A stretch of 64,000 nucleotides of DNA from Phallusia mammillata. Lineage: Eukaryota. The notes below the pieces were generated by a model. That model was not told where the DNA came from, searched no databases, and was given only the letters and a program-made list of their open reading frames with translations. The position numbers and the translations under genes were made by a program. Below are positions 5,244 to 51,800 of the stretch, piece by piece; the first letter of the stretch is position 1; the number at the start of each line of letters is the position of its first letter. The stretch covers positions 3,224,001 through 3,288,000 of the forward strand of contig OZ281498.1 of NCBI GenBank assembly GCA_965637545.1. The letters run 5' to 3'.

Positions 5244-5662
5244 CAGTGGTTCCCAAACTTTTTCATTATTTTTTCAAAACGGTCCCTTTGCCATTATTTC
5301 GAGGGCTCGCGGTCCTTAAGCCTGAATGTGTATTTCATAAAAACGAAAGTTGATTGCAGGATTTTAGCTAGTTATGCAAAATTGCGCATAACAATCATTC
5401 AAAGACAGCATGTGACATCACAAACAGGACAAAAACATTACGATTGTGCGCGAACAATTGCATTTTTGATAGTTGTCATTCAATAAAGGTCATTGTTTGG
5501 CAATGGAGACAGTCGATTCTCAATTCTACTTTAATTTAAACTTATTTAGTGGCACAAACTGACGCCAAATAAGATTATAGAATTACTTCAACCGCTTCGC
5601 GGTCCCCCAAAATTGCCTCACGGATCCCTAAAGGACCGCGGACCCCAGTTTGGGAACCGCTG
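5244..5662. mobile_element. hAT-type MITE (419 bp)
   Basis: TIRs CAGTGGTTCCCAAAC / GTTTGGGAACCGCTG; perfect 8-bp TSD CGTTACTG (5236-5243 and 5663-5670). Confidence 0.92.
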
Positions 5663-8633: not shown

Positions 8634-10065
8634 ATGGTTTTATTAACTGCTGGTAAGTTACTTAGAGCCATTGGGGCAAGGACGTCCACAGTGAAACTCG
8701 AAAGACCTGCGAAGTTGATGATGAAGGGAAGAAATCCCATCATAAGAACACGACAGTATCTCGAAGAGGGTATAGTGTTTCGGGATTGTGTAAAAATACT
8801 TACCATACATTTTGGTGACTATAATGACAACGAATTAAAGTGAGTTATTTTAAATATTTACTTTACTAGGTAATGAAATACATAGCAAAATGACCTTTGC
8901 AGACTGGGTAGGATCAATGAAGTATTATGAGAGTGGGTGTTCAAATATTTTAGTTTACATATCAGACTTTATGTAAGCTATTGCTGCCAGATATACATTG
9001 TTAATCGTGCACCGTACTATGCGCATTCAGTCACTGAATGTTATTTACCCTGATAAAAGCGACCTGTGTAGGACCCAGTCTGCAGAACATGGCAGTTCCC
9101 GACGAGATCTTGCGCGTGCAGTACCTATAAGTCCCGCGTGCGCGCGTGCACGACCCATAAGTTCGTGTGCAAGACCAATTTCAGCAGGTGCAAATAAAGT
9201 AAGAGGTCAACACAGCCCATTTAGACGCCTTTGGTGCAAAATTTACGGGTGCAAACCCCAAAAATTGGCGTGCAAAAAATTTTGTTAAAAAAAAATCGTG
9301 GGTGCAGCTGTCATACTATGCAGACTGGTGTAGGACATCGGAACAAACATACAATTGCCAGAAAAGCTCTATAAACTTGGCTTACTATTGTAAATACTTA
9401 ATACATTTGACATGTTGAAAGTTGCTTCTAGTTTATACATGCATATTGTGCTTTTTTTGCAGAGAACTTGTAGATTTAAATTTCAGTCAACTACAGTACA
9501 AAAATCCAAATGTGCAGATTCTTTGTCTTAAAAATCTAACTCCAACCCCTTTTCTGACATTTTTCTTGGGTAAATACATGAAAACTTGCTATTTGGAAAA
9601 AGTGCAAAAACACAATAAGTTTTTACATGCAGATGATGGTGAAAAAGTTGTTGTTGATGTGGAAGGCATGACACAACTGCAGATTTTGCAACATATTCAA
9701 AAGGCATTTGGAAAACCACGGTAAGGCAATATTTTAATGAAGGTAAAACCAGTTATCTGGATTCAAAGGTCCTGTAGTTTTTTTATTGAGTAAACTAAAC
9801 TCAACTAATACAATAAATCAAAAGCGTTATGTGCCCTTTTCTTTGCAGTGAATTGGTGCTGTTTGAAAACAAAGCAATGGAACCCAACCCAGCCAACTTT
9901 GGAAAAAACTTTGCAAGAAAATGCATTTGCACTGAACTTGGCCAACTACCTTGCATGTCAACTAACAAAGTTGTCCCTTTTGACAAGCGGGATAAAATAA
10001 GTGGAAAAAGAAATTGGAACTATAATCCTAAAAAATATCCTAATGGTATTGAGGAAATAGTATGA
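8634..10065 (+). CDS. MRPS25: Mitochondrial ribosomal protein S25 (mS25), 205 aa, 4 exons
   Basis: Exons 8634-8839, 9463-9569, 9633-9720, 9849-10065 total 618 nt with GT-AG ends. Motifs MMKGRNPIIRTRQYL, QLQYKNPNVQI, LTPTPFLTFFL, NPANFG, CICTELGQLPC match mS25 (human MPMKGRFPIRRTLQYL, QYKNPWVQI, HPANFG, CICEVEGQVPC). Confidence 0.93.
9075..9328. mobile_element. hAT-type MITE, CCAGTCTGCA family, copy 1 (MRPS25 intron 1)
   Basis: TIRs CCAGTCTGCA / TGCAGACTGG; perfect 8-bp TSD TGTAGGAC (9067-9074 and 9329-9336); internally homologous to 21912-22160. Confidence 0.93.
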
Positions 10066-45830: not shown

Positions 45831-48800
45831 ATGCCAGTCAGAAAGCAGGGTGAGTAGATTACCTATGTGTTTAATAAGTTCTGTTGTTATGATTTAAAAT
45901 GATACATATCAATAGATTTCCTTAAATTTTATTTGGGGAAAAAATGACCACAGCACATTGAAAATGTTAATTATTTTATAACCCTTGAATTTTGTGATTT
46001 TAAGATGCCAAAAGGGCACTGGCTTTATTGGAGCAGTACCACAATCGACTTGACAATCCAGATGATACGCCACTGAAAGGGGCCCTTGAAAAAGTAATGG
46101 ACATTTTTAGAAGCCAATTGTTCCATGCATTGTTGGGTAAGTGTAGTACTGTAGCGTTTTGTTACAAATATAAGCAATAATATGCTTTCGCCAAATTGTA
46201 AAATATTATGATACAGATATGTTGTCATTAGCGGGCAATTTAGACTAAATTGTGTTGTTTATTGTAATTCTAGTAATTACTTTGTTTTCGACAAGACCCA
46301 GTAAACATCCGTAATGGACAGACGTTAGACCCGAGTGTTTGTTTACCCCTTGTTGTAAATTGATACATTGTCTTGATGAATGCATATTGAGCAGCAGTGT
46401 TTTAAACATTTTTGTAGATATTCAAGAATATTATGAACTAACGTTATCGGAATCAACTGAAGATATGAAATACAACCTAATGGTACCACAGGAAAAGCGT
46501 TGGAATGACATCTCTACAACAGGGAACACCTCACAAGTACCAAATCAGTACAACAACAATGCCATATCCACAAAAAAGGTCAGTGCACACTGTAGTTCCT
46601 CATGGTATTGGGGTTGTTTGGTATAATATCTCATTGGTGACAAAAAATAATAAATTTGTCTGGACAACAAAATATTTAATGATACTTGTGTTTTTTCATG
46701 CTGCATAAACTAAAAAGGATACACATTTATTGAGATGTGGACAAGTTGTTTTATTGAGTCGATCATTCATTCTGACTGTTAACACTTTAGTGGTTTTAAT
46801 CTAAACTGCAGAAGACTGCTATTTATACTTGATTCAAATTTATCAAAAAATTGAGTCATTTATCCTTGAACTCAAGATAAATATACTTTGCCTATGCAGC
46901 AGCATCGGTATCTTGCAAGGGTTTGCTTTTTTGCAGACTTTTTTTTCATCTGGAGAAGTTTCCTTTTCTCAAGGGAACATAGTTGGTTTGTAAGACTCTT
47001 CTCACCATGAAATATTAAATTTATTAAATGTGCCTTCTATTCGAGACCCAATGTTAAAACTATCTGTACTTATTTGTTTGAGCTTTCAGAACTAATATCA
47101 GAGTTTTATGTGATAAGGTAGAGGTTGGCTTGTTTGAAAATAAAATGCTAAAAATCATCATACAATATCCAAAACACATTCATAGTGAATTTGAGCATTT
47201 GTTTTCTGCTGTATTTTTTTCAGAAATAATCTAGTAGCAAAACATTGTTTTGTTTGTTTAAGAAAAACAGGAAACTCTTTACGAAATCACACATTATATT
47301 TCCACTTCACCTTTGGTGTTGGGACGTTTGCCAGTTGCCCTTTTGACTACAACTTGTATTAGTTTGGTCTCCACAATTTGCAATAGCTTCCTGTCGCTTC
47401 CCTTGCGCCTCAACCGCTACTGGCACTCCCTTCACATAACAGAGGGTTCCTGAACTCGTAACTGAAGGCAATTGCCACCAATCGCCGGGCGTTTACCTCA
47501 TGGACCCATGCCCCATGCTACTTTGTGCCAAGCCTCGTTGGCTGACTGTCTTATTGCCTTGTGTGATGCGAGCTCGTCTATTATAAATGACGATCGATCC
47601 CCGGGACAGCTCGCCAGCGACGTAATGCACCCATGGGATTCAAGAGAGTCAGTCTAAGGATCAGAATTGGTGCTTGCCGAGTACTCGCCCTGTGTGATTA
47701 AGTCAAGAAGGTGGTTACGTCATTTGCGCGTATTATCTTCAGTGCCACGTGGTTCCAATGCCACAGGAAAAGAGGTTGATTCGCCGGAAAAAGGTTTTGA
47801 GCAAAGTTGTCAGTGGACAATTGTTATTAGAAGTATTGGCAATTGCTTTCGACTTATGCAATTGCATGCGTTGTCAGGCTGTGACAGAAAAGGGCAATGA
47901 ACAGTGGTAATCTCAAAAATCTTAATAAACGCGCTGGCCGCTGAAACAAGAACGGTACCAATTGGTATTTATGTCGGATTTTAACGTTGGGATCAGAAAC
48001 CCACAACAGGCCCGTCACATTTATTGCCCTGGTAGCGTAAATGAGAATCTGATCAGCATTGATCCAAGATTTTTATTGGGATGTCGGCTTTCTCCGTGGT
48101 ACGGTTTTCCTGTCACATTAAGCATTGACAGGCCGTAACCGCCGCTACAAGGTGCAGTTTGTTTGTTCTTGGTGTAAGATCTGCATTCGCAAAATAGGCC
48201 AGACGGACTGTGACATGTGCGACTGGCAAAAATGGAGTTTTGGAAAAATTGGTAAAAGTTATACATTCCATTTGCAGTCGCCGTGTTCGACTTCAACAAA
48301 GAATACGTTAGCCAGATTTACTATTCAAAGTGGTAGGATTTGTTTAGTTTGTGCAATTTGGCGTTTCGCGTGTTGTCTCAATGTGATTGTTTAGGTTTTT
48401 TAGGATGCCGGTAGAGGTTATTTTTTAGCTGACGGTGGTTAGTGGAAAACCGTCGTCTAACACTTACAAAACCCTTCAAAAAATAGTGTGACCAGAAAAT
48501 GTCCTGTATGTGTTTCTCAAAGGTGAGTTCTTCGTTTTATTCTTGTGAAAGGAGTCTTAATCGCGTTCGTGTGTGTCACTTGGCTATGGCTTTGTGTTGT
48601 GAATTGTCGTCACCAGTCTTTCGTCCTGTCTGTTATTCTTGTCATAAAATACCAGAGCATGGTGGCGTGTTTACATAGTTGTTACTTCGCTCGTAAAATT
48701 TCTCGACGTTTTAACACTACCAAGAATTTGGGTTCCTCTGTGAGCCCTCCCTTTGTAGACCAGTGTAGGTATGTGTCATAATGACTGAAGTTAGGCGCGT

Positions 48801-51800
48801 GTATAAAATCAGGTCTATATTTGGCCCAAGGTTGCTACTCATAAATAATGTACTCCGGTTGGTGTGTTTGAAATATTCATATTGGCTTTTTTTTGCGGGT
48901 ACAGTATTGCCTTTAGCTTGTTATCCACTATATCGAACCTTGGCTGTTCATATCAGGTCGCAATCGCAATCTTTATCATGCCAATGGCCAGCGCTTATAG
49001 AATAATTTTGCTGTTTGGCAGTCACGTTTGGGCGTGTTATCGCGCCATCTGCTTCATTGTGTAGTTCTAATAAGACATACTCCCCCTGGAAAGCGAAGAA
49101 GGTCGCACATTTTTGTCAAACGTCAAACCCTATTACATTTGATACTGCATTCATTTCCATGGAACGTGTATTGGGGATAAACACATATGACTCACCTAAT
49201 GCAGCTGAAAATGTTAACACGTGGTCCACTCCGTCAGTTGTGAAGATCGAAGTTGTTGGTTGAATCGATCGCCTGTCTGTACTCTGCAATCTGTTTGTAA
49301 AACTTTTACTCAGTGTTGCATGCGGCCATCAAAGCGGAACGGTGATCGCCCTTTTTTGTGCAAGCTTACCAACTCTGTTTCACACAATTGCCGGTCTCAC
49401 GACCTGAAATATCGTATACAATTAAAATTATTTGCATAAATAATACGAACAATCTAAACTTTTTTTAAATTGCGCAAAGGTTTGTTACGAAATTCACTTC
49501 CTATTCTAATTGACATCATCCGTAAAAATATGACGTATACCAAAAATATGACGTATGCCAAATATTTTGTGATTGGAATATAGCCTATATGAAGATAAAT
49601 TTAATGTGCCTTTATGTCTTTTTTCTGGGGTTATTGTTTTGTATAAAACTTGACGCAGAAAATTATTTGCACGAGATTTTGTGTGACTAAACTTTATATT
49701 CACTTGGTGGACGCGAAAATTTACGAAAAGTGCACGTAAATGTCACGACGTTACCCCAGGTCGATTTATAGGGCAAAGAAACTGAAATCAAATTTCGATC
49801 AGTCTGGACCAAAAAGTCGTTCTTAATTAGATTATTCAACCATACGACGCGGGTGTTGCTCGTATTGTGTTCCATGCCTTGCATCAAGCATTGATCCTTT
49901 TTCCTGTTTTCACCTATCTATTAAATATAGTCTGTGCATTCAGCCAGCCAAACAATATGCAGGATGAATAAGAACAAAGTATGCTGGTAATGTAGCAAGT
50001 CGATATAAGAGAGCGCTAAGCCGTTGGGACGCAACATTCATCGCTAATCCACGTTGCATGCGCTTTTATGACGGTAGTTGTTCTATGCGACAGGGATTCC
50101 CTTCTTGGTGCCGACACCGTTCGTTGTCTCTTTGATAAAAATATTTCCCGAGGGCCACGCCAGTTACTTTTACTTGGTTGGCCAGCAATCGATGCCCGTC
50201 CTCACTGCTTCCCACGATCGATGCTTGGATTGTCGTGGAAGACTTGGCCGTCGAATATTTCGCTCACCAGATCGCGTGCACATGTAGTTTGAGCCAACTT
50301 AAGCAGGAATGCAAGCAGTGTGAAGTATTTTCTAGTCCAAGGTTGTAGGGACGTATTCAAGTTATATTGACTTCTGCTGTATTTAGGTGGATGGATAAAT
50401 GTGTTCCTGCGCGATTTAATTTGTATCTTAATCAGATTATGTACAGCTAGACTAGACCGAAGAAATAAGTTAATTTACAGTTGTATTTAACACTTTTATA
50501 TGCTCTGATAACTCATTCGTACTAGACCCTATTTCTTCTGTTTAATGTGTGCGTGCAAGCAGTCGGTTGCGTGCATTTTTGACTGTGCAAGGGTCCTTTG
50601 ATATTTTAAGCACTAGATTCTTATGGAGCGAACTTAACAGCGCGCGACCTTGTTATGGTTCATGCAGCGTCTTTCCCTCACAGTATGCTTTGTTCTTGTT
50701 CCATGAAATGTAAACGAGCCTCAATCTCGTACACGTTTGGATGCAAGGTAAAGAAAAGTTACCACCATGAGCTGTTAGATTTTACAAAAGTAACAAGAAA
50801 CTTTTGTATAGTTTAATGTAAATTGTGTTAAAAAAAGAGAAGTACAAATACAAATTTTTTTTTGTATTTTGATTGTGTTTTATATGTTTGTTGTGTTAAT
50901 TGGGACATGTATTTGTTGTACAAAATGTTGTGTAAACTCTTTGTTGCTTTCAGCAGTTCTTTTGAACAAGTGACATGCCTAGACTACAGGGCACCCAGGG
51001 TGCTGTCGTGTGTTTAATAATTTAGGCCGGTCGGTTCAATACTAATTTGCAGACTATAGATTATTGCCCGATTAGTGTTAGCATATATTAACTACACCAA
51101 ATTGTACTTTGTTGTAATGTTTGAAATCTATGCGCACAAAAAACTTCAACCTGACGATGAAAAATATAAAAATACCTAAAACTCCTATTGCAGTCAGCCC
51201 TAATTGACTAGGTTGTAGTTCAACTGTGTCTAACTATTACATGTTTTGGGAAATCTTTATTTCCAGGTTAAAATCAGTTATCAGTTGAAATAAAGATTTC
51301 CCAAAATGTGTGATATTACTATGGGAGGTGGAAATCGTTGCAACAATGGCAACAGAACAGGGAATGATTCCCAGAATCAATTTACAAGGATTTGTGTTTA
51401 ACTGTGTTTGCATTCTTTTTGTACAGAAATACCAGTACAATGGTGATGATGTGAATGAAGAAGTTGAACTGCAAAGATCACAGAGTGGAAGTAGTGGCAC
51501 AAAAATACAAGAGAGAACCCAGTTTGCGAAACAACCTCAGCCCCAGTTATCACCAGTTGGATACAACTCAAATGTAAACATTTTTTTAAATTTAGGTTTC
51601 AATTTTAGCTGCACCTACTCATCAGTAGGCCAGTTAATTTCTCATACCACCTCATGTCAATGCATCAACGTGGTATATATCATGCCATTTTTGGTGTTGT
51701 AAACAAAATATGTGATTTATTTCAGACAAATCAGTTACTTCAGCAGTACCAGCAGCCGACCCCTAATGTAAGTACACATGTGAGTGAAGGCAGTACAGTT

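Follow-up and report, generated by a model that had tools for sequence, protein, structure and literature searches.

The discs-large (DLG/PSD-95 family) gene on the + strand of the window, by which we mean the whole 64-kb stretch of DNA that was analysed, probably contains a functional alternative first exon of only 24 coding nucleotides that would give rise to a palmitoylatable DLG isoform, a reading to which we assign a probability of about 0.7. The candidate encodes MSCMCFSK and, from its conservation in two relatives, it very probably exists as a real exon. The putative exon belongs to a type already known, that of the alpha-type N-terminal exons of DLG MAGUKs, which have been described as absent from this lineage.

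The L27, PDZ1-3 and SH3 exons of the gene lie inside the window and GK lies beyond it. In a representative search, the SH3 exon showed 72-79% identity to vertebrate DLG1/2/3 sequences and, judged by this exon, the DLG gene is single copy in the genome. Exon-level matches to the cellulose-synthase family occur at two places of the genome and, although their scores are marginal, they agree with a tunicate (sea squirt) origin. The candidate is located between L27b and the exon that begins with KYQY, 2.2 kb 5' of the alpha1 exon. The relevant features of the window are the following, a slash marking the border between exon and intron:

46004-46136, + strand: L27 exon a of the beta isoform (spliced RNA contigs, translation; homologues in both relatives, listed below)
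46418-46578, + strand: L27 exon b of the beta isoform, with a donor, AAG/GTCAGT, that joins 51427 in phase 0 (RNA contigs, translation)
48484-48486, + strand: in-frame TAG, 15 nt 5' of the ATG at 48499 (direct sequence reading)
48499-48522, + strand: candidate micro first coding exon, MSCMCFSK, of which the coding part is 24 nt (direct sequence reading)
48523-48528, + strand: 5' splice donor GTGAGT after AAG, phase 0 (direct sequence reading)
50685-50747, + strand: alpha1 exon, expressed, long and Cys-rich, 21 residues (RNA contigs; 73% identity to its homologue in species B)
51427-51573, + strand: common exon 2 (KYQYNGDD...), the acceptor hub, phase 0 (RNA junctions, translation)

The codons of the candidate read ATG, TCC, TGT (Cys3), ATG, TGT (Cys5), TTC, TCA and AAG (48520-48522), followed by GTGAGT. 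The first-pass annotation of this DNA had described the ATG, Cys3 and Cys5, the terminal Lys, the AAG/GTGAGT donor and the phase-0 fit to the KYQYNGDD exon, and we observe all of these in the sequence. The motif Met1-x-Cys3-x-Cys5, with hydrophobic neighbours and basic residues after it, is present as MSCMCFSK+K, and the candidate ends in AAG in phase 0, as do the two other upstream exons, L27b and alpha1. The 64-kb window has only three AAG/GTRAGT sites on its + strand, the candidate donor being one of them. Given the in-frame TAG at 48484-48486, no start before 48499 is possible in this frame, and an open cassette exon is ruled out; a scan of the 70 nt before the candidate start (48429-48498) found no ATG.

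Relatives were reached through short ORF-like calls, obtained from a representative search with the SH3 exon and from PDZ word searches, and from these calls to the surrounding contig DNA; their distance was judged from sequence divergence. The closest relatives of the window gene are species B (ENA ERZ25067576 ctg10451; overlapping loci L004, L006, L009 and L011) and species C (Logan SRR10746996_2348; loci L005 and L010), whose PDZ1 shows 82-84% protein identity to that of the window. Their features are:

L011:2055-2186: species B, L27a
L011:3265 onward: species B, L27b
L006:1909-1932, sense strand: species B, micro-exon MHCICMPK, AAG/GTAAGG
L006:9247-9312: species B, alpha1 homologue, MLCSCNCKCNTTSISCYTFGCK/GTAAGT
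L006:13659: species B, candidate exon 2, beginning with KYRH
L006:18265: species B, PDZ1
L010:12820-12689, reverse: species C, L27a
L010:12527-12486, reverse: species C, L27b
L005:6842-6868, sense strand: species C, micro-exon MECLCLSTK, AAG/GTAAGA
L005:7726: species C, exon 2, beginning with KHNYAASDTPSP
L005:10109: species C, PDZ1

The order of exons in species B is L27a, L27b, MHCICMPK/GTAAGG, the alpha1 homologue, the KYRH exon and PDZ1, and in species C it is L27a, L27b, MECLCLSTK/GTAAGA, the KHNY...DTPSP exon and PDZ1. All three lineages have a micro-exon of 24-27 nt in the same intron, 5' of an exon that starts with a Lys and aromatic pattern, and joining the two would give MHCICMPK+K.R in species B and MECLCLSTK+K in species C. 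The micro-exon was found in both relatives and the alpha1 exon in one of the two, as no second MxCxC exon that could be the alpha1 counterpart was found at the species C locus. Two upstream elements were seen next to the micro-exons of the relatives. In species B, a 5-codon uORF ending in TAATG overlaps the micro-exon ATG (L006:1893-1911). In species C, an in-frame ATG occurs 13 codons 5', after a TAA, and the reading from it, MPGCFRNRDKKCD-MECLCLSTK (L005:6803-6868), could bury the Cys motif.

The residues that are kept in the three lineages are Met1, Cys3, Cys5, the hydrophobic residues at positions 4 (M/I/L) and 6 (F/M/L) and the terminal Lys, together with the donor and its phase; positions 2 and 7 are variable, and the length varies by one codon (8 or 9). 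When the window from 45 to 52.5 kb was compared with the relatives by blastn, the PDZ exons alone aligned, at about 71% DNA identity, and the introns were unalignable. The flanks of the micro-exon, in which a promoter or an acceptor was sought, gave no alignment and no shared k-mer motif between the window and the relatives. Since Met, Cys, hydrophobic residues, Lys, donor and phase are kept while flanks and introns cannot be aligned, this pattern is what selection acting on a short peptide, and not on a nucleotide element, would leave behind. The loss of the ATG or of the donor in relatives, named in the first-pass annotation as evidence against the exon, is not what we observe, both being intact in two diverged relatives.

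The SH3 exon representative search returned vertebrate and other full-length DLGs and no full-length tunicate protein, and in the PDZ2 word search PDZ2 proved too conserved to single out tunicates. A peptide word search with exon 2 gave no candidates, which is uninformative because expressed alpha1 fragments were missed as well. One locus, L003 (ENA ERZ25067590), covers the SH3 end of a relative's gene only, and L007 (ERZ25069863) and L008 (ERZ25878362) are DLG loci of other, probably non-tunicate animals. The sense strand of L008 has no MxCxC start between its L27 and PDZ1 exons, which fits the literature view of other invertebrates. This locus (ENA ERZ25878362 ctg18854, 906797-927189) is a very compact DLG gene, with L27a/b at 5322/5745, PDZ1 at 9620, an SH3 exon split in two and a dynein gene just upstream. 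The public representative set also includes a protein of 1144 residues, P0006, which is a GFP-SAP97 fusion construct and thus a laboratory sequence.

The splicing of the gene was read from Logan contigs of four runs (X1, X2, X5 and X6) from three studies, over 45850-51750; these contigs are spliced and are therefore RNA-bearing. In them, the beta (L27) chain goes from an upstream exon into 46004 and continues through the junctions 46136>46418, 46578>51427 and 51573>51726. The upstream exon, sited 5' of 45850, ends in ...ATGCCAGTCAGAAAGCAG (MPVRKQ) in all four runs, and this end resembles the start of vertebrate SAP97beta. Junction 46578>51427 is found in X1, X2 and X6, junction 50747>51427 in X1 and X5, and junction 51573>51726 in each of the four runs, with depths of 19-423 for beta and 12-14 for alpha1. 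The alpha1 contigs are unspliced from 50089 (X1) and 50510 (X5) to 50747, where they join 51427. The contigs thus prove that different upstream exons, each ending in AAG in phase 0, are alternatively spliced to the acceptor at 51427. Concerning the common exon itself, the RNA contigs confirm the start at 51427 given in the first-pass annotation, but place its end at 51573, not 51575.

Several further observations concern the intron between L27b and exon 2. The alpha1 transcript contig has at least 596 nt of unspliced sequence before the alpha1 ATG (50089-50747), and an in-frame ATG at 50655 within it would put the Cys motif 10 residues from the N-terminus. Unspliced, single-copy pieces of RNA contigs occur at 47369-47533, 49106-49424 and 49939-50112, the second of which comes from two studies and reaches about one third of the exon depth in X6; these pieces may correspond to a longer alpha1 leader, to a separate non-coding RNA or to retained intron. 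Just 5' of the exon 2 acceptor there is a perfect 16-nt inverted repeat (51248-51263 / 51287-51302), and X2 contigs match 51287-51393 partly, their ends being loose, a picture that points to a MITE-like repeat in dispersed copies.

The candidate itself is blank in these data: zero RNA contigs cover 48214-48804 and zero joints leave 48522 in the assembled contigs of the four runs, so that the 48522-51427 junction proposed in the first-pass annotation does not appear in X1, X2, X5 or X6. A lack of transcripts using this donor was the first of the findings that, according to that annotation, would speak against the exon. Because assembled contigs lose rare forms and the tissues are unspecified, this blank is weak evidence of absence. 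Nevertheless, the same runs detect both alpha1 and beta, and the blank would be explained if the conserved exon were silent or nearly so in the window species, either as a relic or as an exon whose use is confined to a small number of cells or to rare conditions and which does little at present. We consider this unlikely, as a relic would decay, whereas three lineages with otherwise randomised introns have all preserved the ATG, both Cys codons, the Lys, the donor and its phase, and as the contig data are also compatible with low or cell-type-restricted expression. The claim of a second alpha-type CxC first exon is strongly supported by conservation within the same intron, even if its transcript is missing from the four RNA runs.

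A different explanation is suggested by the region 5' of the ATG. An acceptor-like site, ...ttattttttAG, occurs at 48427/48428 in the window, and a strong acceptor-like site is present 28 nt 5' of the micro-exon ATG in species B. The first-pass annotation had proposed an independent alpha promoter and had considered a trans-splice site near 48428; the flanks revealed no promoter, and an acceptor-like site does exist near 48428, but it is weak and its flanks have no motif in common with those of the relatives. The stretch from 48428/48429, read in the phase-0 frame coming from L27b, meets a TGA at 48489-48491 and so cannot be an in-frame coding cassette exon. Both the acceptor-like sites and this stop, which inclusion after L27b would reach, are compatible with a conserved element that does not initiate translation, namely a stop-containing 'poison' cassette that would be spliced in after L27b and before exon 2, or a uORF-like element with a regulatory role. 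This seems less likely again, since conservation is seen in a peptide pattern, 8 or 9 codons long, and does not extend to the nucleotides, the upstream stop or the acceptor, and no cassette junction is found in the RNA contigs.

The motif is also very rare. In random introns, generated as first-order Markov versions of the 4,848-nt intron with matched size and composition, an MxCxC start leading to a phase-0 GTRAGT donor within 30 codons occurs in 0.18% of cases, and an MxCxC start with AAG/GTRAGT in 0.005%. The pattern ATG-NNN-TGY-NNN-TGY-N6-AAG-GTRAG has a single match on both strands of the 240-Mb assembly, which is the candidate, compared with zero matches for the reversed pattern and 0.24 expected from base composition. 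The broader pattern M-x-C-x-C-x(1-4)-K/GTRAG occurs once per locus carrying it, on the sense strand, and nowhere else (both strands of the window, L003, L005 and L006), with zero matches in 18 Mb of random sequence and composition-based expectations of 3e-5 and 1.6e-5 for the upstream regions of the relatives. A chance open frame followed by a chance donor in an AT-rich intron, an idea favoured by the 24-nt length and by the lack of RNA support found, is extremely improbable and effectively refuted by the uniqueness of the motif in 240 Mb (per-intron chance 5e-5 to 2e-3) and by the recurrence of the pattern at the matching place of the gene in both diverged relatives (2-3e-5 expected each). 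An origin from a repeat or a paralogue was considered separately and is ruled out, because the candidate region is single copy, and so are the RNA pieces near it and the DLG gene.

If the candidate is a functional alternative first exon, as we favour, its transcript would start, or would be trans-spliced, shortly 5' of 48499, and its AAG/GTGAGT would be spliced to the shared acceptor at 51427 (putative junction 48522>51427). The resulting isoform would lack the L27 domain and would read M-S-C-M-C-F-S-K followed by K-Y-Q-Y. Cys3 and Cys5, placed between hydrophobic residues and followed by two lysines, would be S-acylated by DHHC enzymes, as in PSD-95alpha, and the acylated pair would anchor the DLG scaffold to membranes. 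The genome has more than a dozen loci with DHHC acyltransferase genes. In PSD-95, MDCLCIVTTKKYR is the minimal diacylated sequence, with Cys3 and Cys5 acylated, and the basic residues after the Cys pair are required for initial membrane contact (PMC6944663; PMC4035745). The candidate motif fits this minimal peptide: in the predicted N-termini the Cys pair and its hydrophobic neighbours are retained, as are two consecutive Lys across the splice junction. Species B has an Arg two residues beyond the Lys pair, and the window species lacks an Arg after this pair. By analogy, we infer a membrane-anchored, L27-less DLG isoform whose N-terminus, given its resemblance to that of PSD-95alpha, is presumably palmitoylated.

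The dual palmitoylation of the PSD-95 N-terminus has a central role in receptor clustering at vertebrate excitatory synapses. According to reviews, the DLGs of Ciona and other invertebrates lack the PSD-95 motif, which arose in vertebrates (PMC8634674, PMC7685708), and Sanders et al. 2020 state the same for PSD-93 and place the first appearance of the PDZ ligand of ZDHHC14 in Ciona (PMC7685708). From the present exon together with the expressed alpha1 exon, we argue that these vertebrate-only statements rest on annotated beta-type proteins and overlook micro first exons; at 24-27 nt, such exons escape annotation and protein-level comparisons. The chances seem to us about even that the single DLG gene of the tunicate-vertebrate ancestor had L27 (beta), PSD-95alpha-like CxC and PSD-93/DLG1-like Cys-rich starts, and that palmitoylation-dependent DLG targeting predates vertebrates. 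If this is true, such targeting arose before the vertebrates and before the two rounds of genome duplication, and the ancestral exons were simply shared out among the vertebrate paralogues, which contradicts the published view of a vertebrate invention. A micro-exon conserved in three tunicate lineages would take the origin of the mechanism back at least to the tunicate-vertebrate ancestor, and would allow palmitoylated and L27-type DLG to be tested against each other in a simple chordate that has a single DLG gene.

Among known systems, GAP-43 (MLCCMRRTKQ) shares with the candidate an N-terminal pair of acylatable Cys, a hydrophobic patch and basic residues after it, with no prior lipid modification (PMC6944663). 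Nevertheless, it is an unrelated gene with adjacent cysteines (C3, C4), and the likeness is in mechanism only. The alpha-type exons of PSD-93alpha and DLG1 (SAP97), like the gene's own exon at 50685-50747, are Cys-rich alternative first exons that use a common acceptor and end in AAG in phase 0; they differ from the micro-exon in being longer (about 21 residues here) and in having more cysteines. The closest comparison is with PSD-95alpha (DLG4), which starts with MDCLCIVTTK. Compared to it, the window exon is two residues shorter, with Ser/Pro replacing Val-Thr-Thr and residue 7 being Ser or Pro where it is Val in PSD-95, and the window species has no equivalent of Arg13, whereas species B has KYRH; in addition, the host is the single tunicate DLG gene rather than a vertebrate paralogue. 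The candidate resembles the PSD-95 exon in being short (8-9 codons here, 10 in PSD-95) and in having Met1, Cys3, Cys5, a hydrophobic residue at each of positions 4 and 6 and a terminal Lys. Both are located 3' of the L27 (beta) exons, and the candidate, as an alternative first exon, would like its PSD-95 counterpart be mutually exclusive with these and join, in phase 0, an exon that starts with Lys-Tyr-x-Tyr (KYRYQDED in PSD-95).
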